This document shows positions 28,508-64,000 of a stretch of 64,000 nucleotides of DNA, one piece after another. The notes beneath the pieces were generated by a model. The model saw only the letters and a list, made by a program, of their open reading frames with translations, was not told the DNA's origin and made no database searches. Source of the DNA: Azolla caroliniana (Eukaryota > Plantae > Polypodiophyta); NCBI GenBank assembly GCA_043228905.1, contig JBHGNT010000012.1:12462001-12526000 (forward strand), written 5' to 3'. Within the stretch, counting starts at the first letter, position 1. The number at the start of each line of letters is the position of its first letter. The position numbers and the translations under genes were made by a program.

Positions 28508-30587
28508 TTGTCCTCTTGTACGTCGTATATGTCAACTCCTCTCATCTGCATAGTATAGTAAAGGTGACGGGCATTGGGGCCAAGCACGGGTAACACTATT
28601 TCTCCTTCTCGTCTAAGGATTCTAGTACCTTCAATAATAAAGAATAGTGAGTGGTTGGGGACCACCTTGGGGTGGTTGCAAGAGGTCAATGGTATGCATT
28701 GACAAGGAGTTGGCTTCCTAGATGCAATAGGCCAAGACGAACTTACACAAATGTTTAGAAGTAAGACTTCTTTAAATAACTTATAAATTTAATCACTTCA
28801 TGTCAGTTACTTAACACATACACACACAATAATGCCACATCCCCTTATACCCAAAATAATCAAACACAACCTTATATGATGATGTGACAAAACACACACG
28901 ATGAAAATCCACTTAAAGGGTGTCAAAATGTTGCGATATAACAATCAAATAGCTTTAAGAATTAGGCATGTAATGAACCTATCTCTGGCATCTTCTTCCT
29001 GTATCATTGTACCAATCAAAATAGGTGTTATTTTAAAGCATCCCCATAGACAACCCACCCACCATGGCGCGCCAAAGAAATGTCTTTGCATGAAATGGAA
29101 GATGAGAGTGTCATCCTGACACCACTCACCATTTTACATTTTGCATAATGTGCAATGTATTCAAAACCTTCGTCACTAACCAAGCTCTATCTTTAACCAA
29201 CTAATGTTATACATCATTAGTGTGCACCATAAATATCGATTTTTCACTATTAACATTACCAATATTTCCATGATTCCATGATTAACAAATATAGCCATAT
29301 ATAAAACCAACTACTTAAAATAGCATCATTTGCCTACATGACTCTAAATAACATCGTCCACAATTACCAAGTCGAGCCTTGCCTTTCGATTTAACTCTAA
29401 CTTGAGACTTTCTTTTCTATCCCAATGCAATTGTCTGGAAGCCACCATCACCTTCGTTGTCAAAGAATTACTTATCTTTTCTACACTCAAGGGGTCATCA
29501 ATTGAACAATTCCAAACATTGCTGCCAAGAGAGCACTAATTATATAACCATAAGAGATTCTGAACATTTAAATGCTTAAGTACTATTAACAACATGGAAC
29601 CAAGAAGCTGTAATTCTCGTTTTCTTGAAAGGTATCGATCACCTCTTCACAAAAGAAGGAAAGCTTCGAGTTAATGGGGGTGGGCGTGTTCCTTTTACCC
29701 AAAGAGGGGTCGGCATACAAGGAGATTTTGGAGAGGCATGGAAGGGTTTTTGCTTCTACTTCAAGAAATAGGTTGTGGTGATCTGACGCTTATAGAGCCA
29801 ATGGTAATTTTTTATAGTACCACGTGTACCGTTCTCATGAAATGTCGTGTATGCATGTGAAATGTGAGTAGTACTATTAAGGGCCTCAACTAGGGAAGAT
29901 GGGTGTGACAATTGAGTTGATGAGTGTCATATTCCTTTTTAATGTCTTTTGTAAGTGCGAACTAGTTCTCTGAGAGTAGTCAATCGAATATGACATGTTG
30001 AAACCTCACCTTTGACTCAAGTTACCAACTTTCTACGAACGGATGTGCACAAGTTTACATGATCTTTCCTTTGTATTCATGTGTGCTTGTGTTTTCATGT
30101 GTGTGCATATTTCTGTGTTAGTATATAACCATGTTTATTTGATTGTCTCTGTGTATACGAATTTATATAAATGTGTATAGATATGTGTAATTGTGAATGG
30201 ATAAGTGTGTGATTATGTGTAGGTTCGAGTGTATGTATATAAGTTTATATTTGTGAGAGTGTAGGCATTCTTGTATATGGGTATGGGCATGTATAAATGA
30301 TTTCTTGAGGTGTGTGGGTGTTGAGAATCAAACTCAACTTTAGTGTGGGAACAAGTGTGTGAACACCCCACCTCCTAATATAGTAACTAGTGTGTCATAG
30401 AACCTTAAAGTTCTATGACACATATTTAGTGTAGTTAAGTCTCCACCTCTCTTTAGTAAGTGGTGGTTATAGAAAGAGAACATACAGAGAAGGTGACTAC
30501 ATAAGCACCTGTCTCCTCCTCCTTGTTACAGTTGGTTATTCTTGCTCCTTGTTAATACAATTTTCTTGTTTTTCTATATAACTCTGT

Positions 30588-31975
30588 TTTCCAATTTTTT
30601 TCAAAAGCACTATTGGTGTTAAGCAAGGATGCCCACTCTCACCAACACTCTTTGGCCTATGCATTGATGAATTGGAAGAATGGTTACAAAGTTTGCAAAT
30701 GAAGAATGAGTTGAAGAAGTTGCCATTGGGAATGTTGTGATATAATGCTTTTGCTATATGCAGATTATATAGTGCTTTTTACAAATACTTTTGGAGATGC
30801 ACAAAAGCTTATGAAGGCATTGGAAAATATTTGCATGCATACTAAATTAAGCGTTAATAACTCTAAAACAAAGATTATGCTTGTGAAGAGCCAGAAAAGT
30901 GATAAACCACGTATTATGTACAACAATGAGCCACTCGAATGTGTGGAAAGCTTCAAATATTTTGGCCTTGAAGTTCCTTCAAATCATAGATGGAATGAAT
31001 GTGCTACACGCCGCTTAGAAGCGGGTAAGCGAGCATACTATGCATTTGAGAACACATGCAATCTTGGCGATATTAAGTGTTGGGTCCTCAAGAAATATAT
31101 TTTCGACATTTTGGTGACATCAGTTCTTCTCCATGGGGTGGAAGTATGGGGTGATATCATACCTAAATCTATGTGGAAGTTTGAAAATGTCCAAAAACAT
31201 TTTCTTACAAAGTTGCTACAAGTTAAGAAACAAACGCCCTACACCCTCCTCCTCCTTGAGACGGGATCGCTTTTTATTGAGATCATGGCTAGGAAAAGGG
31301 TTGTTGAATACATGGTTAAGGTTTAAAAAAGGCCCCCACATCGATTTCCTAGAATTGCATGGGAAGCAAGCAAAAAGATCCAAAAGACGTATAAAAGCAA
31401 ATTTTTGTGTTCTGGTTAGATGCAAGATATAGAAAAATGGTTTGGTAGATGGGATGCGAGGCACTTGCTTCATGATGCATCACTAGATTCCTCTATAAAT
31501 GAGGCCTTTTTGCAATGCCAATGTATCGTGACATGGGACAAATGTGGAGGCTCACGCTTCACACATTATAGTACATATGTTGCACCTAACCACAAAACTA
31601 TATTCTTTAAGGAATGGGGAAACCGTACACATCGATACATGTTAGAGCCCATACCGTTATTTTCCATTCGAACCATTGCTTCCATGCGACGTAGCTCACA
31701 TGAATTGCGATGTGAGATAGGGTGTTGGGGCACAAGTGATGAGATTGGTTGGCTATGCACACTTTGCTCTAAACAAGTTTGCGAGACTAAGTATCACACT
31801 TTGATACAATGCTCTGCCTTTGATCATATTCGACCATGCTTTCTAGATCTCTTTGATCGAGCCCAATCCTTGCATGAATTCCTCTCACAACCACAATGTG
31901 CACTCTCGATTGCAACATTCCTTGGTAAAGTTCTTGAACATCGAAAGTCACTACTCACTTTCACACGTAGACTTA
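30588..31975 (+). mobile_element. 5'-truncated non-LTR retrotransposon (RTE/RTEX-like) fragment in the 5' LTR of C
   Basis: GVKQGCPLSPTLF, LLYADY (degenerate YADD), FKYFG and a C-terminal CxxC...H...C knuckle; absent from the 3' LTR; same family as 62845-64000. Confidence 0.85.
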
Positions 31976-48300: not shown

Positions 48301-51174
48301 TCCTGCTCCTCTTTCGGTGTTGGAGGTCTCTCTTCCTCGACTTCCGGTGTCAAAGGTCTCTCTTCCTCGACTTCTGGTTCCGAAGTGTGCTCGACTTCCG
48401 GTGCCAGAGGTTCCAGCCTTGTCAATTCTGGTTCCGGTGTCGGCAAGGTATCCGACTCCTCTTCCTCCGGTCTGTTTGGGGTGTCATTATTGCTGCGGTA
48501 GTTCGTATGTGCGTTGTATTCCCCTTTCGAATCCGATTCAAAAGCCAAAAATGCTTCGGATTCACCTTCGCCCGCTGCCAATGCCTAGAGAAGGGATTCC
48601 GCTTACCGAAGGCTGCTTAGGCTGCTTCCTTCGTCCGGGTAGTCGTTTTGTTGTAAACGAACTGACTCCTTGGCCACTCTCTGGATCTCCTTGGAAAATG
48701 AGCGATCCGTTCTGAATTCTTCTGCTGCTTGTTGGAAAGCCTCTCGCTTCCTCAGCCGTTCAGCAAGTCTCCTTGCTCGCTCCGTAACTGGGTTGTTCGT
48801 TGGTCTAGTCATCCATTCCCGCCGTTGTTCGCTACGATTGTGCAGGAATCGTGGTCGCTAAAGACTGTGTTATTCCTTAGGTCCGGACAATGGCCTAACA
48901 CAGGGTGCCTACGGAAGACACTTCACCAAAGGGGTGCTACAGCGAGATAACTTAAGACACAACGATTAAGCAGACTTAATTGGTTACTTAGCAATATGGC
49001 ATTAGACTTGATACACGTGTATGATAGAACAATTAGTACAGAACGGTAATCAACACTTAAAGATAAAACAAGAAGCTCTATTAATTATCCGTCAAAGTTT
49101 TACATTGTAACCGGGCCTTTATATAGGTCATCGGTGCTGAATACAAAACGGTGCCAACCGGCACCTGTTCGGAACCGGTCCGGATCCGGATCGACATACT
49201 GATTTTGGTCCGTCCGTTCACGTCTCATAAACTACTTAATTATAATAGATTCCGAATAAACAATCCCTTTCACATTCTGGTCTTTAAATCCTTTGCCGGC
49301 CGGGTAACAACCATCTGAATCATGATCGCGCTTGCAGCAGCAAAAGGGTGACACCTCCACCAAATGGACGTGAAGAACGACTTTCTTCAAGGCAAATTAG
49401 AGGAGGAGGTGTACATGGTACAACCGCTTGGATTCAAGCCGAGTATGCACTCGACTATTGTCTGCTGACTCAAAAAGCCTATCTACGGTCTCACACAGGC
49501 ATCGAGAGCATGGAAGATAACCCAATATCATCACCAAACCAACTTCAAAATGTCCAAATCTGACAATTCTCTGTTCATCCGGAACGACTCCACAGGACAG
49601 TTATTCATCATAATTTTTGTGGACAACTTGGTCATTGGAGGAGAGCACATTGGAGATATTGAAAATGTCAAGAAGCTTCTCTCTAGTCGATTCGAAATGA
49701 AAGACATAAATGAGCTACATTACTTTCTAGGGATAGAAATAATTCCGAATCCAGATGGCATCATGATCTCCCAACAACACTATATCTTGAATCTTCCCTT
49801 CAAATTTGGGATGACAGAGTGTAAGCCTGTTGCTGCCCCTCTCGATCGAAATCTAATGCTAGATGCTGATTCTGGCATAGAAGAGTGTGAGTTGACATAC
49901 TATCGTCAACTAGTCGGAAGCCTAATCTATCTCACCATTACTCGGTCCGCCCTCAGCTACCCGGTCGTCCTCCTTAGCCAGTTTATGCAGACACCATGGA
50001 ACATTCACTTGGACTATGCTAAGAGAGTGTTATGCTATGTGAGTGGGACAATGGATATTGACATTCTCTACAAATCGGCCACACCGATTCGACTCGAAGG
50101 GTACACCATCGCCGATTGGGCCAACTACAAAGCTGGTAGACGATCAACATCCAGATTCATCTTCTCCCTCGGCAGCAGAGCCACCTCATGGAGCAGTACT
50201 TGAAGCAACCAACAATTGCACTGTCGAGCATAGAAGCTGAATATAGGGGGCACGACCGTCGCCGCATGTGAAGCCGTTTGGCTCAAGAGAATCTTGAAGG
50301 ATCTAGGTGTTCCCATCAAGGATCTCATTCTCCTATACTACGACAACATGAGCAACATCCATTTGGCCTGCAACCCGATATTCCATGCTCAGACCAAGCA
50401 CATTGAGGTGCACTATCACTTCATTTGAGAGCATGTCCTGGCCGGTGATGTCGACCTGCAACACATCGACACGAACCTGGAGACGACCGACATATTCACA
50501 AAGGCCCTAAGCTAAGGTAGTTCACGACGAACCTTGGTCTCTCGATCACGGACCAACCGAGATTAAGGGGGAGTATGGATAAGGAGCCGTCCGACGCGGC
50601 GTCGAATGGAACAGAGTGAACATAGGGGTGAGCCGACTATATGAAGACGAAGCCGGAGCTGACTCAAAGCCGACCTGAAGACCAGTCCGAACCAACTTTT
50701 CGGCGACCGGAAGTGATCGGAAGTTGCATTTGAGGGGGCATCTTGAGAATCAAACTCAACTTCCCTAGTGTGGGAACACACCTTAGTATGGTCAAGTGTG
50801 TGAACACCCCACGGGTGAAAGCATGCGAGTGGAAACAATTAGCTATGTCCTTGACATAGCTAATTAGCTATGCAAAAAGCTACCATTGATAAATAGTCAT
50901 TTTAGTAAAAAGTCATCATTAATAAATTAAGTATGCAAAAAACTACCATTGAAAATACTAGAGTGTTTTAATTACATATGTAAATGAGTGCCATAAATGT
51001 GCAACATAAATTGATGTGTGCACCATAAATGTGTACCATAAATTATATATCGAATTCCTAGGTCCATTATGCATGATCCTTTGCCACATCACGTAGGCCA
51101 TCTCTAGTTGAGTATTGTGGGTTAGTTGCTACCACTGTTGCTAAACCCTATCGAGTCCACCTGCTGCCACTGAG

Positions 51175-51790
51175 TCTACACTGAGGGGCCGCTATTGTGC
51201 ATTCCAAGCATCATCAAAGAGCTGCTCAATTTGACGGGGTTCTCTTCTCTGTGACACTCTACACTCAGGGGCCACTACTGTGCATTCCAAGCATCATCAA
51301 AGAGCTGTTCAATCTGACGGGGTTCTCTTCTCTGTGCCACTCTACACTCAGGGGCCACTACTGTGCGTTCCAAGCATCATCAAAGAGCTGTTCAATCTGA
51401 CGGGGTTCTCTTCTCTGTGCCACTCTACACTCAGGGGCCGTTACTGTGCGTTCCAAGCATCATCAAAGAGCTGTTCAATCTGACGGGGTTCTCTTCTCTT
51501 TGCCACTCTACACTCAGGGGCCGCTACTGTGCGTTCCCAGCATCATCAAAGAGCTATTCAATCTGACGGGGTTCTCTTCTCTTTGCCACTCTCACTTAGG
51601 GGCCGCTACTGTGCGTTCCAAGCATCATTGGTAACTATTCAATCTAACGGGGTTCTCTTCTCTGTGCCACTCTACTCTCAGGTGCCTTCTATGTGCGTTC
51701 CAAGCATCATCGGTAACTGTTCAACCTGACGGGGTTCTCTCCTCCATTGCCATCATTCTATACTCAGTTGCCGCTACTGTCCAGTCCCGG
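51175..51790 (+). repeat. 83-bp tandem repeat, about 7 copies, upstream of the transposase
   Basis: Unit CTACACTCAGGGGCC...GACGGGGTTCTCTTCTCTGTGCCACT; near-identical short ORFs start every 83 bp (51197, 51280, 51363, 51446, 51529). Confidence 0.95.
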
Positions 51791-52073
51791 ATTGCTTCCA
51801 CATTTCGATTTGACGGAGTTCACTCATCCAACGACAACATTCTACACTCAGTTGTCGCCATTGGTCGGTCTTGGATCGCCTCCTCAACTGTTCGATCCAA
51901 CGGAGTGAAATCCTCTATTGTTCGGTCTTGGATTGCAATAATTTTTCTGTCTATTGATTATCTTGTGTATCGTTGTGTCTAATCTTGTGTATTGTGGAAT
52001 ATTTTTGTGTATTGTTGTTGCCCATAGCCATCTTTAATACTTGTTTTTTTTTCTGGAAATTTAGGGTTTTAAC

Positions 52074-55000
52074 ATGTCCAGCCAAATGGAAGGGGAAGAA
52101 GGGTGTTTAGAATTACCCCTCAATGATCATAAGGATAGGGATGATGCTATCAGGACACAACAAGCCATACGAAACTATTGGGCAGAAAAAAAAAGGAAAC
52201 ATCGTCAATTGTTGAAGGATACAAAAGCCACACTCAGTAAAGGTAAGGATAGTTTAGCTGAGAATGTAAGTAATGCGACTACCATCATAGAGAGAAAGGT
52301 TGTAGACTATTTCAATGTTCAAACCAAGCACATCAGCAATGAAGAAAAGAAGGTAGTACTTTATGGAATATGTAATGATCCATCGATAAAGGACTTAGTT
52401 GATTGTGATGGTCTTAATGCAAACATATCATCTATTTTAGTAAATAATCTTCGTAATAGTTTCGTATCCATGAGCAGGTCAGAAGATGATCTTGTCTTAA
52501 AAAGGTCTAGTCTAATGATGTTACTTAATAGTGATGTTGACGATATAAACATCAGTGAGCTATCTAAGGTAATTGGTGTTAGTAGAAAAACAGTGTACAA
52601 TACAATGAACCGTATAATTTCCTCGGGTGAAGGAACTAGTCTACTAAAGCTAACTACAAGATGTAAGCCAATGACACCCATAACATTTGAAATCAAGGAT
52701 GTAATCACAATGTTTTGGACTAATGAGAGTAGGGTTTCACCCAATAAAAAGGATTTATGCAGGAAACGTGTTGGAAGAAATCAATACGAGGAGCATCCCA
52801 TTCATCTTCTTGATGTACCTCAGGTATTTACATTTATCTCAACATTTGTTTTGACTCTACTCGGAAAGTTAATTAGCTCAGTTAGCAGAAAAGCTAATTA
52901 GCTTATCAATTACATTTACCTCAGTTAGCTACTAGGATAGCTACATAGGTAACTTGCTACTCTCAATAGCTACTACCATGATAGCTAATTAGCTATTCTC
53001 AATAGCTAATTTAGGTACTACCAGATAATTAGCTGTACTGGTAGCTAGTTAGCTATCATGGTAGCTAGTTAGCTATTTCGTTATTACTAGCTAATTAGCT
53101 ACTAGGAAAGCTAATTAGCTACCATGATAGCTAATTAGCTACCATGATAGCTAATTAGCTTACTAGGATAGCTAATTAGCCACCGTGATAGCTAATTAGC
53201 TACTAGACCAGCTAATTTGCTACCGTGATAGCTAATTAGTTAGGACAACTAATTAGTTAGGATAGCTAATTAGCCACCATTATAGCTAATTAGCTACTAG
53301 ACCAGCTAATTAGCTACCATGATAGCTAATTAGCTACTAGACCAGCTAATTAGCTACCATGATAGCTAATTAGTTACTAGAACAGCTAATTAGCCACCAT
53401 GAAAGCTAATTAGCTACTAGACCTGCTAATTAGCTACCATGATAGCTAATTAGCTACTAGACCAGCTAATTAGCTACCATGATAGCTAATTAGCTACTAG
53501 GAAAGCTAATTAACCACCATGATAGCTAATTAGCTACTAGAATAACTAATTAGCTACCATGATAGCTAATTAGCTACTACGACAACTAATTAACTACCAT
53601 GATAGCTAATTAGCTACTAGAATAGCTAATTAGTTACGAGAATAACTAATTCCCCTTTATTACGCAGGTTGATTTATTTATTAGGTTCAAACGAATGCAT
53701 CCAACTATCAAAGTTCAACTACGAACATTCGAGTCTCTTAAGCCACACTTTGTGAGACGCTTAAAGGATCGATACACATGTTGTTGCATTTACCATGTAC
53801 AGATGGGTTTTCTGAAGGACTCTGTTAATCTACTACGTCACCATAGCGCATCCCTAACTAATATAGTTTACACATGTGGGTGCCCAATCTGTCGATCAAG
53901 CCCGCAAGAGGAGTGTAAATCATCTGAGCACGTTATCTCTTCCATGAGTTATTTATTAGATTCAATATTGTGTCCGAGAGAAACTGACGCTATCTTCCAT
54001 ATTCATAAATGTGTCATGGGTTTATGTCAAGATTGTGGCCCTACTAGATTTAGGTGGTGTCCAAATGAATTGAGTAGTGAAATATTGATCTCTGTGAAGT
54101 TATTTGAGTCAGTGAACACCAATTTCGAAGGAAAGGTGTGTAAAAGAAAGGATCTAGTTCGGAAGATGCTTAAACCAAGGGATTTGGTGTCTCTGTTTGT
54201 AGTATCTCTAGGAAAGTTCATTAAACACAACTTCATTTATTCATGGCAGGCCCATCAGTTTAAGACTTGCATATCTGATTTCCCAAATGATGTAGTAGTC
54301 TCAGTAGTAGATTTCGCAGAGAATTATAGTTTCAAGCAGCAGAATGAAATTCAATCTATGCATTGGTGTTCAGTTCAGGTAACCATTTTTGTGCACATAA
54401 CATATTTTTGAGTTTCAAGTGATGTTAAAAAAGTAATTCATTTCTTTATTTCCGATGATAAGAAGCATGATACCTTGTTCGTCCAACACTGTTTTAAGTT
54501 ACATTGGCAGTGGTTATTAGCTCAACGTTTGGAGCTTACTCAACATTGGGTTTGGTCTGACGGAGCTGCATCACAATTCAAGGCTCGACGTCCATTTTAT
54601 TTTGTGGGGAGGTATCCTGCTATAACAGGTTTGGAGATGAGATGGATTTTTTTTGGGTCTGGCCATGGTAAAGGTGAACATGATGGTGCATGGGTTGTTA
54701 TAAAGCGGGCACTTACCCATGAACAACTAAAGACAGATGGTGTGCACATGTAGTTGAATTTTTAAGAACAAATATGTCAACGAGTGCCACAGGTGTTTAT
54801 TCCTCACAAGTTCGAGATATCAAACGTGAATTTTGGGAAGTGAAGATAGATGAAGTAAATAGGGAGAAGACCTGGGAGTGCCAAGGAATTCCCGAATTGC
54901 GATCTCTGCATGCTGTTCGCGGTTATTCCAGGTTGGATGGTCATTGTATTGCGGTTAGAGAATTGACTTGTTTTTGCTTCCATTGTGTGCAGGGAAATTG

Positions 55001-55493
55001 GAGATATTGTCTAAACAAAGCATACATTCAGAATTGGGAGTATCACACTCTGAATGATAAGGAAGCAGTTGATGGAGAAATAGGGCAGAATGCTGACTTC
55101 ACATATGAGGGACTTGGAGATACTTTGAGTGATGTCCTGAACGTTGGGGATAACTTCGTTGTAAATGCTGAAGAAGGCAATTCAGAGGGTGTTGATTTCT
55201 ATATATTAAAGTGCACGGTTAGTAAACAGTGTGCAAGGCAGAATATTGTAGATGCATGGGGAAATTTTGTATCTGCCGGGACAATCTACATCGAAGGCAT
55301 TTTTTATGCAAAACTAGATGACTACGAATATGTGTACAGGCTGTTAGAAGACAAACCAACGGCGTACATGTACTCTCATTTGGTCAGGTGCATCAACGTC
55401 CCAATGTCAGAATACAATAGCTGCTCCGGTTTATACACTGTTGGTGCTAATGTGTATGAATGTATTTACAATAGTATGCCATGGAATTTGTAG
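52074..55493 (+). pseudogene. Sola2-like DDD transposase, two exons (52074-52823, 53668-55493), with a nonsense codon at 54409 and a frameshift near 54745
   Basis: HTH-like ISELSKVIGVSRKTVYN; Cys-rich region; DFAENY..QNEIQSMHW; ISDDKKHD; WSDGAASQFK; GHGKGEHDG; CFCxxC; GT-AG phase-0 intron. Confidence 0.85.
52870..53650. repeat. Array of the 14-bp palindrome TAGCTAATTAGCTA (~20-bp period) filling the transposase intron
   Basis: Direct reading; spacers alternate between CCATGA and CTAGA(C/A). Confidence 0.95.
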
Positions 55494-55839
55494 CTACAAG
55501 TAGCACTTACCATGTTCTCTTGTAAAACAAACATGTATTTCGCGAAAACAGTTAAATAAATTCGTTTGGAATCAATTTCTTGTATACAGTCTGCTTTTTG
55601 TGCTTCTTTCTCAATAAAATCATGTCTTTTTTGTGAAGTTTTAAGTTATAAGTATAGCGAAATAGTCATCAGTAGCTAATTAGCTGTATAAATGCAGCTA
55701 ATTAGCTGTCAATAGCTAAATAGTCATCAATAGCATGAAATCAACAATCTGCAACATATTCCTCAAATTACACAGTAGATAAGTACAGTGGGAACAAGTA
55801 ATTAAATTCTTCATTGAATAATGTCATCTCTTTACATAT

Positions 55840-56895
55840 TTATAAATTACCATTGGAAATGTCTACAAATCTCCTATAAACAGCTAAGCTCTTGCTAGTC
55901 AGTGGAATGAGTCTACATATATTATCCGCATATCGAGCTCGGTATGGAGTCCACAACCATGCACCTAGTTGGTAGCTCACTGTTTGCACCAGGTACTGTT
56001 CAGGCATTTCCTCGGGTAGAATGAGACAGCATCTCCGAATATTGAAGTAGTGCCGGAAATGTTCTGTATCCAAAATCAATGTATTGTCGGCATTATATTC
56101 AGGCCAAGTAGCCCAAAAATCAGAAAGTCTCTTGAATCTTGCAGCTTCCATTTGCTCACAATTTTCTCGTGCCCATTGACCTTTAAAACGACTTCGCCAT
56201 TTTGGGAAGAATCTTTCCAAACACTTCCACACATCTGATTTTGGTTTTTCACTCCAAATAAACAAATCAAAGTATTGCACAGCCCACTCTAGAAACTGAT
56301 TCCCGTCCCTCCTTGGCTGCATATATCTCACACTCATCAAGACTTTATCAAGCTCCAAGATCAAGGCTCTTCTTTCAACTTCTAGTGGTTTAGGTTTCCA
56401 TTCCTGAAACTGAGCCGTTGTTACACCATTTTCTGGTAGGATACGATCAATCTCAATCAGCTCAGGTTCGGCCGACACAACCGGCGTCCTTTTCCTCTTC
56501 AAACCCCTAGTCGACTGTGTTGGGCCTGGCTTCACATTCTGGTGCTCTTGTTTTGTCGACTTAGTTATCAATCCTTGGATTACCTCGGTGCATGTAGCTA
56601 CTGATCTGCTCGATATCAGTCCACTGGTATCACATGCTGCATCTACCTGCAACACCAAGTCATCCGTGCTACATGCTTGATCAACTTGTGTGACCAGATC
56701 ACTTGTGTCAGTTGCTACATCTACTTTCAAGATGGGGCCCTTTAAACATGCCACAACATCAACAGTATCCACACTGCCATTGGCCTTACGAGGAATAGAA
56801 TCAAACCCTTTAGACTCTGCAACATCAGAAAACACCAACATATTCACACTCACAAAGTAACTAACAGTCTCACAAAACAATATCCTGAACATCAA
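55840..56895 (-). CDS. FCP1/NIF (CTD-phosphatase-like HAD) domain protein with degenerate catalytic motif; last exon of the accessory gene or a separate gene
   Basis: RALILELDKVL (normally LVLDLD/N), FLEWAVQYFDLFIWS, W.RENC, KRLSDFW, EYNADNTLILD; 351 open codons. Confidence 0.65.
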   Translation of the reverse strand: MMFRILFCETVSYFVSVNMLVFSDVAESKGFDSIPRKANGSVDTVDVVACLKGPILKVDVATDTSDLVTQVDQACSTDDLVLQVDAACDTSGLISSRSVATCTEVIQGLITKSTKQEHQNVKPGPTQSTRGLKRKRTPVVSAEPELIEIDRILPENGVTTAQFQEWKPKPLEVERRALILELDKVLMSVRYMQPRRDGNQFLEWAVQYFDLFIWSEKPKSDVWKCLERFFPKWRSRFKGQWARENCEQMEAARFKRLSDFWATWPEYNADNTLILDTEHFRHYFNIRRCCLILPEEMPEQYLVQTVSYQLGAWLWTPYRARYADNICRLIPLTSKSLAVYRRFVDISNGNL

Positions 56896-57564
56896 AGAGT
56901 TTCATTACATAATGTGGATCAAGCAACAACCAATCTGAGGTTTTACTTGTCCAACACGATAGTAAAACTTCATAAAACCCTAGCAAAATCCCTAAGCTAA
57001 CAATCATATCCAACTAAACAGTATTTCACTCCACTACGTCTGGGCCCCTGGACCGAGTAACTGGTCTTGTTCCCGATCGTGGCCCCTTCTTCAGCCTTTT
57101 TCTGGTTGGTTCCCCATTTAGCCTTGCTTCTTTCACCCAATGCGCAAGTGTGTCCTCCTCCGACAACCTTCCCATCGCCTCAGCAGCTAATTGCACATCA
57201 GCCGTTTCTTGAACTAGCTTTTCAAGTACAGAGGGATCTGTTTGGACATTTTCAGTAGTTGGGCTCGGTGGGGTGGAATCAAGGTCTTGAGATTCGAAGA
57301 AATGTTGCATCAAGTGTTCATAAACACTGTTGTTGTGAACCTCAGTTTTACATGTTGTTTCCACTATTTCATGGCATTTCACATCGTTGCCTAATTCAGT
57401 ACACTATTCCAAAAGAATAGGGTGGAGCTGATCTGAAGGAGATGTGATAGCAGGACTCTTACTTTCAGCCACGTTGGCAGTAGTATCCTCATTTGTTGCA
57501 GCGTCATCAGCACCAGACACATCATGTGCCGTCCTTAATCCACAAGATTCTACAATAACATGGC

Positions 57565-58650
57565 AGCTATTTAGGATAGCTAATTAGCTACTTTACTAAA
57601 CTATGGTAGAAGCTAGGATAGCTAATTAGCTAGTATGATAGCTAATTAGCTAGTATGATAGCTAATTAGCTAGTACGATAGCTAATTAGGATAGCTAATT
57701 AGCTAGTACGATAGCTAATTAGCTACTTTACTCAACTATGGTAGTAGCTAGGATAGCTAATTAGCTACTATGGTAGCTAATTAGCTACTTTACTCAACTA
57801 TGGTAGTAGCTAGGATAGCTAATTAGCTACTTTCTCAACTATGTAGTAGCTAGGATAGCTAATTAATTAGCTACTTTACTCAACTATGGTAGTAGCTAGG
57901 ATAGCTAATTAGCTACTATGGTAGCTAATTAGCTACTTTACTCAACTATGGTAGTAGCTAGGATAGCTAATTAGCTACTTTACTCAACTATGGTAGTAGC
58001 TAGGATAGCTAATTAGCTACTTTACTAACTATGGTAGTAGCTAGGATAGCTAATTAGCTACTAGGATAGCTAATTAGCTAGTAGGATAGCTAATTAGCTA
58101 CAATGAAAGCTAATTAGCTACTTTCTCAACTATGTAGTAGCTAGGATAGCTTATTAGCTACTAGGATAACTAATTAGCTGCCAGTAGCTAATTAGCTACT
58201 AGGATAGCTAATTAGCTGCCAGTAGCTAATTAGCTACTAGGATAGCTTATTAGCTACTTTACACAACTATGGCAGTAGCTAATTAGCTAGTAGGATAGCT
58301 AATTAGTTGCCAGTAGCTAATTAGCTACTAGGATAGCTAATTAGCTAGTAGGATAGCTAATTAGCTTTTTTACACAACTATGGTACTAGCTAATTAGCTA
58401 GTACCATAGCTAATTAGCTACTAGGATAGCTAATTAGCTGCTAGTATTAGCTACTAGGATAGCTTATTAGCTACTTTACACAACTATGGCAGTAGCTAAT
58501 TAGTTACTAGGATAGCTAATTAGTTGCCAATAGCTAATTAGCTAGTAGGATAGCTAATTAGTTTTTTTACACAACTATGGTACTAGCTAATTAGCTGCCA
58601 GTAGCTAATTAGTAGGATAGCTAATTAGAAAAGACTAAGCTTATTAGCTA
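57565..58650. repeat. Second TAGCTAATTAGCTA array filling an intron of the accessory gene
   Basis: Direct reading; spacers CTAGGA, GTAGGA and CTTTACTCAACTATGG... Confidence 0.95.
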
Positions 58651-60039
58651 CAGTATGGTATACATGTTAGTTTTCTCCACTCATTTGGTAGAGCTGTACT
58701 GCAATCTCCCAAATAGAATGCAGCAATTCGACAGGCATGTTGAAAACAAAGCAGATGGTATGTGTGGTTGCATGGTTGTAGGTGAACCAACAAAGACACA
58801 GTTTTGTCCTCCACACCTAACCCGCAAGCGCTGCAACGTGCTTGAACTGTCAATAAATCATTTTCTGGTTCTACTTCATTTGGTAAGGGAGCAAGAATGT
58901 TCAGGTCCAAATCCTGTCTGGTCCTTACCATTCCCTCCACAAAATGTAGCTGCTTCTTAAGGCAGCTAACTACCTGTTCTTGATGAATGTATTGTTCCTT
59001 CAACGCAACAGAGAAATTTACCGATTAATTATTCTTGTTGTTGAAAGATACACCAACTTTGCTCAAGAATCGTTAACTTACTTGAAGCTTATCCAAATTG
59101 TAATCTGCAATAGTATTTACACCTAGAAGGTCCAGGTTCATTGAAAGAACCTGGATCTCTATTTGCAGTTCTATTTTACGCTGGGGATCCACTGGCCCCT
59201 CTAATTCAAGCTCCTATTGCGCAACCTATTCCAGATAATGCTTGATTAGCACATTTTACCCGTTATTTATAACCCAATCACATACCAGCAAAACAATAGT
59301 TACCTGAATCTTATTTCTAATTGTTGTAACAACGGAAGTAACTTTGCTCTCCATTGTAGAAGCCATTGTGGCTTTCTCTAAATCAGTCTTAAAAAATGCC
59401 AATGTCTCACAGGCTTCATGGACATTTTTTAGCATATAGCTAACCAATGTCTCACCTGTATCATCGACATTGGCTTTCCTTGGGTGTCGGTGTGGTGTAT
59501 GCCCCCGGTCTTGCTGGGAGTCAGCAGTTGCATCAACAACTGCCATGCTCCAAAATCTGTCTATTTTTTGTGCCAAGGTCCCCATCTTTCGACATCTTTT
59601 TACCGATGCCTCACCATAGACTGCCCAAGCTACCCTATACATTTTAGGGTCTCTGGATTCCTTCGCTGTTTTGCAGTACTCATATGCAAATGCTCTAGCA
59701 AATGAAACTGACAACTCATTGTTAACTGGGATCTCCTGATGAACTTTCTGGTGCAATCTCATGCAGTCATCGTACAAATCGGCTCGTACATGCTTCAGCT
59801 TGACCTTGCCTTTGACTCTAGGCACTGTATATACTGTCATCCAATCTACATCACTGATCAATTTATCACTTAGGACAGCAGGGTCAACACCCTCGAGTGA
59901 CAGACCATAGGTGTTGTGGAAGTCCTCCTTTGTCTCGCAAAATTTTGCGAAGTTTAGCACTCTCGTATACGGAGGAACGAGCCATCTGAAATATCATTTC
60001 AGAAATAAGAAATAGTGCAAAATCAGAATATGTGAGAAT

Positions 60040-60535
60040 CAGAAACCCCAATCAACAACAACAAAAATGGTGCAAAATTTTTAACTTAGCAAATCAGAAA
60101 CCCTAATCATAATTTGTATTCAGAAATTTGAAGAAACCCTAATCAAAATCTGTAATCAGAAGTTTGAAATCAGAAACCCTAATCAAAATCTGTAATCAGA
60201 AAATTGTAACCAGAAACCTTATTCAGAAATTTATAATCAAAAACCCTAATCAGAAACCCTAATCAGAAATTTCAATCACAAACCCTAATCAGAAATCCTA
60301 AACAGAAATTTATAAACAAAAACCCTATTTAGAAATTCTAATCAGAAATTCTAATCTGTAATCAAAATTTGTAACCAGAAACCCTATTCAGAAATTCTAA
60401 TCAGAAATTTATAATAAAAAACCCTAATCAAAAATTTCAATCACAAACCCTAATCAAAAATTCTAATCAGAAATTCTAATCAGAAATTTATAAACAAAAA
60501 CCCTAATCAGAAATTTCAATCAGAAACCCCAATCA
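60040..60535. repeat. Degenerate AAACCCTAATCAG (telo-box-like) array in the first coding intron of the accessory gene
   Basis: Repeated AAACCCTAATC / AAATTCTAATC / AAATTTATAA units. Confidence 0.85.
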
Positions 60536-61307
60536 TCACTAAAGACAGGATTAAACACAAAAAAAGTAATCTAAACACACCTGTTGCTTCTCCCCGATTT
60601 GCGAGACATCCTTGTATGGGACTCCAAGGACTTCGCCCTATTCGATTTTGGGGAAATATGAATTGGCACCAAAGTTCAGACAGTAGTCAAAAAGAAAAAA
60701 CAAATGTTTGAGGTTTCTGTAACTGAAACATACCTGGACGATGATCGAGCGGGTTCTGTGTTGTAGGTCTCAATCTGCAATGTCGATTTTCTGCTGTTGC
60801 GGGAGCTACGTCTGCGTTCGTGCTCTGAGTACTCCATCTGCGTTCAAAATCAGACTTAGGCTAAACAGGAAATTGATGACATTGAAGTCGACCTTAGATG
60901 ATGGTGTTATTCCCCAAGTTCCATTACGTCTGAAACAGAAGTTCAAATATTTGAGTTTTTTCATAAATTAGTTTTTCAAATATTTGATTTTCCCACAAAA
61001 AAGACTAGCTAAACAAATAGCTAATTAGCCATGGCCATTTTAGTAGCTAATTAACTATAATAGTGTTTCCACTCGCATGCTTTTACCCCCACCTCCTAAT
61101 ATAATAACTAGTGTATCATAGAACCTTAAAGTTCTATGACACATATTTAGTGTAGTTAAGTCTCCACCTCTCTTTAGTAATTGGTGATTGTAGAAAGAGA
61201 ACATAGAGAGAAGGTGACTACATAAGCACTTGTCTCCTCTTCCTTGTAACAATTGGTTATTCTTGCTCCATGTTAATACAATTTTTCCTGTTTTTCTTTA
61301 TAACTTT

Positions 61308-61358
<51 letters not shown>

Positions 61359-61417
61359 TATACACACATACACACACCTTCTATTGCACAAAATCACTCC
61401 CGATTCATTATAGTGGG

Positions 61418-62172
61418 CAAGGTTGTTAGGTACGTTTGATATATTATGGATAGCATACGTATATAACGTATTAATACGCGTATAGTACCTCCGAATTTAA
61501 AAATACGTTAAATATGTTTTTTAATATGTTAAATACTTATAAAATACGTATTTTACGTATAGTACCTTAAATACTTCTAGGATTTGAAAATTATTTACCT
61601 TTCTAAAAAATATTTGTAATATTATTGTAAAAAGCATGTTTACACAAATTTGTAATGTACAATATAGTTCTACATCCTAAAATGCATATAAGACATTTGA
61701 GCATTTCACATCCTAAAATACTTATAATATGGATGTCGACATTCACTGATTCTATAAATCAGTGTAAGTGTGTATCACGATGTTCTACTTCAAATTGTAA
61801 TTATTTACGATTATGCCTTCATAGATTGAGGAATCGTCTACGATTATCACACTTAGGATAGGTTTCTATCTTCTTTTCTGTCTTCTTCTTCTTCTTCTTC
61901 GTTGTCGTCATCATCTCTTCTATTCTTCTTTCTTCCTTGTTTTTGCTTCTTTTTCACTAAAATCTTTTTTTTCTTTTTCTTTTTGTTGGGGTTTTACTTA
62001 CATTTTTTTATAAATACGTATTATACTTGTTTTTTCAAATGTACGTTAAATACTATATTGGACAAATGTACATGATATTTGACTGAACAACATTGAGGTA
62101 TAGTACATACTATACAAATTATGAGGTATTATACATATTTAAACGTTAAATATGGGTACTTAAACAACCATG
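61418..62172. mobile_element. hAT-type non-autonomous element (MITE)
   Basis: Imperfect TIRs CAAGGTTGTTAGGTAC / GTACTTAAACAACCATG; perfect 8-bp TSD ATAGTGGG (61410-61417, 62173-62180); AT-rich, no ORF. Confidence 0.8.
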
Positions 62173-62272
62173 ATAGTGGGTAATTGGGTCTATGTGTGTT
62201 TTATGGCATTTTGGAGCTCCTCTGCCTATGTTAGAAAAATGTTTATCAACATGTCCATATCAACTTCATTAT

Positions 62273-62690
62273 TGTTGAGAGACAAGCTCAACATGAGCCG
62301 GATTGGTTATAGGCCGGTAGGCTGGATCGACTGAAGAAGCTGACACTCGAGCCGGCTTAGGAGGATTGGCTGAAGAAGCTGACAATCAGATCCATTGAAG
62401 AAGCTAACACTCGAGCCAGCTTAGGAGGATTGGTTGAAGAAGTTGACAATCAGATCCACTGAAGAAGCCGACAGGCCGATAGGATTTTCCTATTCATAGT
62501 ATTAGGAAAATTTTGGGGAGTCAGTGTCAGATGCTCATTTATGAGCATTCAAGTACTTGTGTCAGCCCGCTATCAAGGCTTGTATAAAAGTTCTCATTAA
62601 GCACATTATATGTACCGAGTCTTTTTTGAAATAGAGTTACTCAACAATTTCTCTACACGCAAGAGAAAGCGCATGCATGTGCTAAATTTT
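62273..62690 (+). mobile_element. LTR-like relic related to 11608-12050
   Basis: Shared TGTTGAG..GACAAGCTCAAC start and ATGAGCATT.AAGTAC...CTTGTATAAAA core; right end uncertain. Confidence 0.5.
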
Positions 62691-62844
62691 AAGGAAATCT
62701 AAAGGGGAAACGTGTTGAGAGTTATGGTGACTTAACGCTTATTGACTTGTCTATGCATTGTAAGAATCTATATGAGCTATCTCTTGCCAGAAAGATGATG
62801 TGTTATGGTTCTCTTTCACATATGTCTCCCTTCTTTACAATCGA

Positions 62845-63265
62845 AGATATATGCATAGGACTTAAGAAATTGACCTCTTGAAAGGCAAGCGATCTTCAAT
62901 GTATAAAAGCGGAAATGCTCAAATGGATGGGAAAGGAAGCACATGCATGGATAAGCGATATGTTTAATCATGCATTGAAACATGGTATGCCATATGATTG
63001 GAAACCTTTATGTAAAGGTGGAGATGTAAATAATGTAAACAACTATCGAACCATCATGGTTGGTTCGCTAATGGCAAAACTATTTGGATGTATAATGGAA
63101 TCAAAGATAAGTGCATGGGCTGAAAAAATTGGTAAGTGAGCTTATGGACAAGCCGCCTTTCAAAAGTGTTAAGAATTAGGTAAGTAATTAAGGGTTAATT
63201 AGTACCTAATTATGCGCTTAAGTTAAGCGGAAGATTATGTGATATGTGTGTGTATGTGTGTGAGA

Positions 63266-63341
<76 letters not shown>

Positions 63342-64000
63342 CACTTATGAACAACACAAGATGGGGGATGAGTAACAATATTAAATTAGCATTATCATCA
63401 TCATCATACAAAAATACCTACAATGAGGTATATATAGATCTCATGTGCAAGGGTGCACATGTGTGAGGATAACATAGGTACAAACTTGTAAGTCCTATAT
63501 TAAATGCACTTGGGAGTGGAGGATCTACAATATCCCGCTGAAGTACAAGCTCCTATTTAAGGCATTATAGTCAACACTTCTAACTAGATTCTATATAGGT
63601 AACTACGAATTTACATGGTTGACTACCTAACTCTCAACAGAAAGCACTACAAGGTTTATATTGTTGTTTTGTTGACTTTAACAAAGCTTTTGATATGGTA
63701 CCTCGTGAGCATCGTTGGAGGTGAATGGAAGAACTCAAGGTGCCAAGTGAATATATGCTTGCAATCTCCTGAATATATGAGAAGGTTATATGTTGTGTGC
63801 ATATGAGCGATAAAATTTCCGATTTTTTCAATAGCACTATTGGTGTTAAGCAAGGATGCCCACTCTCACCAACTCTATTTGGTCTATGCATTGATGAATG
63901 GGAAGAAATGGTTGCCAAGTTTCTAAGGGAAGAAGGTGTTGAAGAAGTTGCAATTGGTAATGTTGTCATTATGCTTTTGCTATATCCGGATGATGTAGTG
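62845..64000 (+). mobile_element. Degenerate LINE RT (same family as 30588-31975), running off the window
   Basis: KGGDVNNVNNYRTI, GQAAF, YCCFVDFNKAFD, GVKQGCPLSPTLF and LLYPDD, with stops. Confidence 0.85.
63167..63639. mobile_element. Probable solo LTR with (GA)n inserted in the LINE
   Basis: TGTTAAGAATTAGGTA...TACCTAACTCTCAACA inverted ends; near-TSD AAAAG/GAAAG; interrupts the LINE ORF. Confidence 0.6.

Follow-up and report, generated by a model that had tools for sequence, protein, structure and literature searches.

A Sola2-type DNA transposon of land plants with a conserved convergent accessory gene of possible anti-silencing function

Why would a DNA transposon encode, next to its transposase, a second protein that combines a RING-like finger with a phosphatase-like domain, and what could such a protein do for the element? 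The question is raised by a 64,000-nucleotide stretch of the fern Azolla caroliniana (GenBank assembly GCA_043228905.1, contig JBHGNT010000012.1, positions 12,462,001 to 12,526,000 of the forward strand), referred to below as the window, with coordinates counted from its first nucleotide. A 10,276-bp element occupies positions 50813-61088. This copy is non-autonomous, mutated and slightly decayed, and it belongs to a Sola2-type transposon of land plants that has two genes and a high copy number. An earlier note on this DNA had described a transposase on the plus strand and a convergent multi-exon gene or genes on the minus strand. That arrangement was borne out by four transposase open reading frame (ORF) pieces on the plus strand (52074-55493) and convergent minus-strand ORFs (55840-60837), the latter read here as one accessory gene, all domains of which are joined in gene models of the fern Adiantum nelumboides.

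Does the accessory gene belong to the element, or was it acquired recently by this copy? Searches for homologues of the accessory gene were made exon by exon. The exons for the NIF/FCP1-like domain (NIF), the RING-like finger and the conserved N-terminal domain (N-domain) keep this order, convergent to the transposase, also at loci L001 and L002 (metagenome contigs), L003 (A. nelumboides) and L004/L016 (GCA_016852305.1), where the transposases are about 50% identical to that of the window. The transposase core led to 80 further loci, of which more than 15 carry convergent RING and N-domain exons, including loci of Ceratodon (a moss) and Calypogeia (a liverwort), and the two N-domain groups proved to be homologous (hhalign 94.9%, E 4.5e-8). 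Each of the NIF relatives for which the neighbouring sequence was inspected adjoins this transposase. Across 14 elements, the pairwise distances of the transposase correlate with those of the RING exon (r 0.70, Mantel p about 2e-4). The ratio of nonsynonymous to synonymous substitution rates (dN/dS) was 0.23 for the NIF domain (window versus L089) and 0.18 for the N-domain (window versus L011), compared with 0.19-0.23 for the transposase core, and the excess of synonymous changes in the accessory parts reached p values between 4e-8 and 6e-10. This level of purifying selection contradicts neutral evolution of the accessory ORFs. Further, the whole accessory region was covered evenly, in two DNA runs, by thousands of contig pieces of 85-100% identity. 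This cover indicates that the region is present throughout a very large family. The order kept beside transposases of about 50% identity, the correlated divergence, the selection equal to that on the transposase core and the even depth strongly support the view of the earlier note that the accessory gene is an integral component, co-evolved with the element, and not a recent capture. The gene is ancient, has been passed down vertically together with the rest of the element and is maintained by selection.

The anatomy of the gene is consistent with a single transcription unit read from the minus strand. A putative first coding exon (60734-60837) begins with the ATG at 60837 and ends with the donor CAG|GTATGT at 60734. 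The presumed first intron (59995-60733, minus strand) is filled by a 13/40-bp array that includes nine copies of the telobox-like sequence AAACCCTAA. The next exon (59256-59994, minus strand) encodes the N-domain and the start of a coiled coil, and splicing of exon 1 to position 59994 keeps the frame and gives an Arg-Trp junction, as in the fern models. Short coiled-coil pieces sit between this exon and the RING-H2-like exon (58647-59024, minus strand), which is followed by an intron (57519-58640) holding the second of two arrays of the palindrome AGCTAATTAGCT, with about 48 units. Between the RING exon and the NIF exon there is an open frame (57026-57382, minus strand), possibly a lineage-specific linker exon; no homologue of it was found in the other loci, and its TGA at 57026-57028 is CGA in most other copies. 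The last exon (55840-56895, minus strand) encodes a low-complexity linker, a basic KRKR stretch and the NIF/FCP1-like domain. All these junctions are predicted, that of the first exon from GT-AG borders, reading frame and homology. In A. nelumboides, the gene models carry the N-domain, the coiled coil, the RING, the basic stretch and the NIF domain in one protein of 750-930 amino acids, which suggests that the accessory gene is one convergent multi-exon gene for a multi-domain, predicted nuclear protein. Where the NIF exon begins, around 56888-56904, many other copies of the family have 35 additional letters and a 17-bp overlap, and in a minority of copies 5 bp are missing at 56991. Because of these variants, intact copies may have a different arrangement of exons from the 57026-57382 frame to the NIF exon.

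In the A. nelumboides genome, more than 70 genes annotated as 'hypothetical protein' (P0086, P0221-P0296) are copies of the accessory gene, some of which the annotation joins to domains of retrotransposons (rve, RVP_2), and a search with the fern protein P0086 was dominated by paralogues of this one species. Recognition of the accessory gene therefore cleans up the annotation of at least one fern genome, in which dozens of its copies bear the label 'hypothetical protein'.

Which domains does this protein contain? The NIF/FCP1-like domain named in the earlier note was confirmed at the level of both sequence and predicted structure. The window ORF scores 30.5 bits against Pfam NIF (PF03031; cut-off 21.8), and nine of ten relatives score between 24 and 56 bits. 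A single-sequence search of this ORF against the sequences of the Protein Data Bank gave nothing useful, and a family profile compared with solved proteins matched UBLCP1 (E 4e-5) and CTDNEP1. The structural model, with a predicted local distance difference test score (pLDDT) of 90.5, matched UBLCP1, Tim50, CTDNEP1, SCP1-3 and Fcp1 in Foldseek, with E values from 1.6e-7 to 4e-4. The prefix 'pseudo', which the earlier note had placed before phosphatase, was also appropriate. The catalytic signature DxDx(T/V) of motif I is absent: the window copy reads ELDKV, its clade ELDK or EVEV, and nearly all of 40 family members D-L-N-G-[VIL], whereas the aligned CTDNEP1 and true enzymes read DLDET. The Trp-Ser/Thr, Lys and DD/DT positions are retained. 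Because motif I is degenerate, the domain is best described as NIF-like and probably non-catalytic. A known parallel is Tim50, one of the closest structural matches, which along with other non-catalytic NIF/FCP1-like domains combines the FCP1/SCP fold with a degenerate DxDxT. In contrast to Tim50, the accessory protein is predicted to be nuclear, has no membrane anchor or presequence-receptor role, and keeps the W-S/T, Lys and DD/DT positions. Among the weak matches to the NIF family are plant proteins of host type in which the DxNG variant is also present, for example an FCP1-like protein of Morus notabilis, and the existence of such proteins makes it probable that the NIF domain once originated from a host gene.

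The RING-H2-like finger recurs across the family. An alignment of 16 elements shows a C3H2C3 ligand series, C-x2-C, C-x-H-x2-H-x2-C and C-x3/4-C, the last pair being spaced by x2 in canonical RINGs. The zf-RING_2 model was matched by 11 of the 16 members, with E values down to 4e-4, and further RING models also matched. No member reached the gathering score, and the match of the window copy is weak (E 0.03). The seventh ligand (58713-58715, central position 58714) is Tyr in the window copy and Cys in nearly all other copies in the two DNA runs.

The accessory gene of the moss Ceratodon purpureus (L005, 20942-21730) ends in a second RING, of the C3HC4 type, and has no NIF-like domain. This version indicates that the C-terminal effector module has been swapped in evolution and that the conserved core consists of the N-domain, the coiled coil and the RING, with NIF as a clade-specific addition.

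The N-domain had been described as an unknown domain. At the sequence level this description stands: Pfam PMD, Transposase_32, Transposase_28 and ATHILA gave no match at E values up to 10 for 12 N-domain members, searches of ESM Atlas features for the PMD class came back blank, and a comparison of the N-domain with solved structures matched no relative. At the level of the fold, a confident model (pLDDT 86.4, predicted template-modelling score 0.80) suggests that the domain is PMD-like. In the ESM Atlas, the seven closest shapes all belong to plant clusters, with template-modelling (TM) scores, normalised by the query, of 0.49-0.54 over 116-129 residues. Four of the seven have annotated domains, namely PF10536 PMD in two clusters, one of them MAIN-LIKE, and Transposase_32 or ATHILA ORF1 (PF20167, PF03078) in the others. 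On the basis of these models, kinship of the N-domain with PMD is somewhat probable.

A third feature of the element is an abundant short motif. Its 10-bp core, GCTAATTAGC, has 55 exact copies in the 64-kb window, and all 55 fall within 50,500-61,500, in or at the element. They comprise 22 copies at 52,500-54,000, in the region of the transposase intron, 29 at 57,500-59,000, in the accessory intron, two between the genes and one beside each of the terminal inverted repeats (TIRs). The earlier note had called this a private repeat shared by the introns of both genes. Private it is, within the window, but it is not purely intronic, as AGCTAATTAGCT also lies directly inside both TIRs. Relatives have enriched motifs of their own, GTGGTAATTAGT in L012, ACCATTAACA in L010, AAGTACCT in L001 and TGCTAGTTAA in the fern, and their arrays occupy the corresponding introns, that of the transposase in L001, L009, L010 and L012 and that of the accessory gene in L001 and L003. 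Telobox-like AAACCCTAA sequences occur 13 times in the window against about one expected; the nine in the accessory first intron lie at 60091-60535, and another, at 52061-52069, is 5 bp upstream of the transposase ATG. Teloboxes are plant promoter elements tied to the recruitment of TRB and Polycomb.

What kind of transposase accompanies this gene? The product is a transposase of about 860 amino acids from two exons. Exon 1 (52074-52823, plus strand) has 250 codons, with weak helix-turn-helix matches, and a predicted donor CAG|GT at 52823/52824. The putative intron 1 (52824-53667, plus strand) carries an array of about 30 copies of a 20-bp unit with the palindrome AGCTAATTAGCT. Exon 2 (53668-55493, plus strand), which encodes a Cys-rich region and the catalytic core (DFAENY, WSDG..QFK, GHGKGEHDG), begins after CAG at 53668 in a phase equal to that of the exon 1 end, and the stretch that this putative splice would join is conserved in L001, L004 and L009. 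The last three of the four ORF pieces form a single open frame of about 620-650 codons in L009, which is 96% identical to the window copy, and in L004. Exon 1 gave a dN/dS of 0.65 (52074-52823 versus L009 85-918; 23 differences, with a synonymous excess that is not significant).

No Pfam model matches the transposase core. The assignment of the element to Sola2, proposed in the earlier note, is supported by three features: a 4-bp target-site duplication, GGG...CCC ends and a motif match to a published Sola2 transposase. The rule for Sola2 termini, attributed to Bao et al. in 2009, is reportedly 5'-GRG ... CYC-3', with which the ends of the element agree. Sola2_DFa-2 of Dictyostelium fasciculatum has a transposase of 888 amino acids, 4-bp duplications and GAG...CTC ends (PMC3627910 supplement). 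Its motifs NRTDTCPYCH, DFKENI, WSDGAKHFK and YHGKSDVD are collinear with, and spaced similarly to, DRYTCCC.YH, DFAENY, WSDGAASQFK and GHGKGEHDG of the window, in a comparison made motif by motif, by eye and unscored, against the printed sequence. The element thus shares with described Sola2 elements (PMC3627910) the 4-bp duplication, short TIRs that end in G-R-G...C-Y-C, a DDE transposase of about 860-890 amino acids and the collinear series [DN]R..C..C, DF[AK]EN, WSDG..FK and HGK..D. The difference is that those elements encode the transposase alone or together with Fanzor, whereas the plant clade adds the convergent gene for a PMD-like/RING/NIF protein and the intronic arrays. Relatives of the transposase with a named source are those of Ceratodon, Calypogeia, Cryptomeria and Taxus, and a clam has a distant one; ferns provide the closest named relatives, and bryophytes and gymnosperms make up the wider clade. 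According to a 2026 preprint, Sola2 is the commonest DNA-transposon superfamily in a cypress, a conifer.

Sola2 itself, transposon accessory genes in general, VANC, and the PMD proteins of MuDR and Gypsy elements are already known. In a search of the literature, with Repbase and Dfam outside the comparison, no account of Sola2 elements that carry this accessory protein came to light, and a search for transposons or transposases with FCP1 homology returned no paper. The earlier note, whose author knew of no description of this two-gene architecture, is in line with this outcome.

What, then, might the accessory protein do? To our knowledge, VANC of the Arabidopsis VANDALs is the only transposon-encoded, sequence-specific anti-silencing system that is understood. 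A conserved and selected accessory protein in another superfamily, and in ferns, mosses and liverworts, would make the generality of such anti-silencing testable well beyond the Brassicaceae. In VANDAL21, the motifs bound by VANC form tandem repeats that change rapidly; they lie within introns of VANB and VANC and also upstream of VANA (PMC5735166, PMC10398659). PMD-C proteins associate with specific DNA motifs, oppose Polycomb marks and work with, or fused to, PP7L/PP7 (PMC7156037; bioRxiv 10.1101/2024.09.27.615353), and the PMD is structurally similar to the DUF1985 of VANC, according to a preprint. By analogy with these systems, the accessory protein could be a motif-guided anti-silencing or chromatin factor of its own element, a proposal to which we give a little less than an even chance. 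The protein would recognise the short motif of the element, here AGCTAATTAGCT, amplified in the introns of both genes and near the ends. Once bound, it would shield the chromatin of the element from host silencing, through DNA methylation and/or Polycomb, and this shielding would allow the expression of both genes and the spread of the family. The RING and the pseudo-phosphatase would act as protein-interaction or ubiquitin-ligase modules directed toward host chromatin or transcription factors.

The logic of this proposed protection parallels both VANC of the VANDALs and the pairs of PMD and phosphatase-like proteins MAIN/MAIL1-PP7L. The analogy with VANC, already drawn in the earlier note, appears to gain from the PMD-like N-domain and from lineage-specific intronic motif arrays like those of VANDAL21. 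Both systems have a transposon-encoded protein that is not a transposase, short motifs in tandem within introns and upstream regions of the genes that the element itself carries, with a different motif from one related element to the next, and possibly a related N-domain fold. They differ in that VANDAL belongs to the MuDR superfamily and is found in Brassicaceae, whereas this element is a Sola2 of ferns, bryophytes and similar plants, and in that the Sola2 accessory protein, known here from sequence, adds a RING and a phosphatase-like domain. With MAIN/MAIL1-PP7L and the PMD-PP7 fusions, the accessory protein would share a PMD-type fold together with a phosphatase-like partner, combined in one polypeptide in some species, and, as proposed for the accessory protein, a link to chromatin state at specific DNA motifs. 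In contrast, PP7L is of the PPP class and a host gene, whereas the accessory protein has a domain of the HAD/NIF class, an added RING and a transposon as carrier, and shows no sequence-level PMD match.

Several observations weigh against a motif-guided chromatin factor. All of the likeness to PMD comes from TM scores of 0.49-0.54, with no match to Pfam PMD or to a solved structure. The core of the motif is TAATTA and transposase exon 1 has weak homeodomain-like helix-turn-helix matches, so that the transposase, and not the accessory protein, may be the binder of the arrays. The motif also lies beside the TIRs, the usual place of transposase-binding sites. The NIF domain would not be essential for the core function, since the moss version lacks it. 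Finally, the region was found in no RNA run, and the two RNA runs that were checked held no trace of the genes.

The main rival explanation is that the accessory protein is a transposition cofactor, which binds the motifs and/or the transposase, pairs the ends or imports the transposase, and is needed for excision and integration. The Myb-like protein of PIF/Harbinger and TnpA of CACTA are precedents, and cut-and-paste elements that encode a cofactor of this kind in a second gene are well established. The motif copies immediately inside both TIRs, the coiled coil and the basic, nuclear-localisation-like stretch of the protein, and its strict linkage to the transposase under equal selection would all fit a cofactor. 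In contrast, the bulk of the motif copies lies in large internal intronic arrays, away from the ends, the PMD-like fold suggests a class of chromatin factors, and we know of no transposition cofactor with RING and phosphatase-like domains. This explanation is possible but, in our judgement, rather unlikely.

Less probable still is a role in self-regulation, in which a RING E3 ligase or pseudo-phosphatase would act on the transposase or on a controlling host factor, adjust the amount or activity of the transposase and thereby limit damage to the host, with the arrays serving as transposase-binding 'sponges'. The RING-H2-like ligand pattern would suit such a ligase, the homeodomain-type TAATTA core of the arrays and the helix-turn-helix matches in transposase exon 1 would suit the sponges, and the very high copy number makes some control compatible with success. 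Self-regulation explains the PMD-like domain and the lineage-specific change of the motif no better than a motif-guided anti-silencing factor does, and we consider it improbable. As for captured host gene fragments, carried as a Pack-type passenger with no role and in neutral decay, the host-like NIF proteins with the DxNG variant, such as that of M. notabilis, could be cited in their favour, and this explanation was rejected as very improbable in view of the conserved order in several plant groups, the dN/dS of 0.18-0.23, the co-divergence with the transposase and the NIF relatives that adjoin it.

If the accessory protein is indeed a motif-guided anti-silencing or chromatin factor, it bears on the origin of the host PMD proteins that oppose Polycomb silencing. 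A wider formulation, which we regard as doubtful, is that the Sola2 elements of land plants possess an anti-silencing system that is ancient and sequence-specific, and that arose independently of VANDAL/VANC or shares a remote ancestry with it. A PMD-like DNA-reading domain with a RING and, in one clade, a pseudo-phosphatase would have co-evolved with the intronic arrays and would keep members of its own family free of DNA methylation or Polycomb marks, and such a system might be a source of the host MAIN/MAIL1-PP7L modules.

How well is the element delimited in the window? The 25-bp TIRs (50813-50837 on the plus strand, beginning with GGG and followed by subterminal AGCTAATTAGCT copies, and 61064-61088 on the minus strand, terminating with CCC) are identical at 24 of 25 positions, and their pattern is found at no other place in the 64-kb window, where none is expected by chance. 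The element is flanked by CCAC on the left (50809-50812) and on the right (61089-61092). The flanking host repeat has a paralogous copy about 20 kb upstream, which presents an empty target site with one CCAC (30349-30388). When the element and one CCAC are taken out, the joined flanks align to 30352-30588 with 93.7% identity over 238 bp and no break, and this seamless alignment shows that the empty site is genuine. The clean bounds, inverted repeats, duplication and visible empty site described in the earlier note are thus borne out by the match of the ends and the alignment of the flanks. A duplication of 4 bp is the sole reading with symmetric GGG...CCC ends, and the C run at the right end leaves 5-6 bp possible. 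Clean ends were not recovered when L001 and L002 were searched for the TIRs, as these contigs probably do not contain them or GA/CT repeats mask them, and an Rfam search of the element matched no family.

The copy in the window has accumulated damage. Its transposase frame has a TGA at 54409-54411, where L009 has CGA, and a 16-bp deletion near 54747, and because of these lesions the copy is unable to make transposase. Both premature stops that were checked (54409-54411 and 57026-57028) are CGA to TGA changes, and most differences from the family majority, including that at 58714, are a T or A in the window where other copies read C or G. These stops and this bias are what deamination of methylated cytosines would produce if the copy was silenced. 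Upstream of the transposase start, at 51175-51780, the 5' part of the element holds an 83-bp tandem repeat (7.3 copies, 90% match), which accounts for a ladder of spurious overlapping ORFs at that place. To the right of the element, the host repeat shows a further interruption of about 2.5 kb at 61310-63816, relative to the paralogous repeat at 30588, which is probably another nested insertion.

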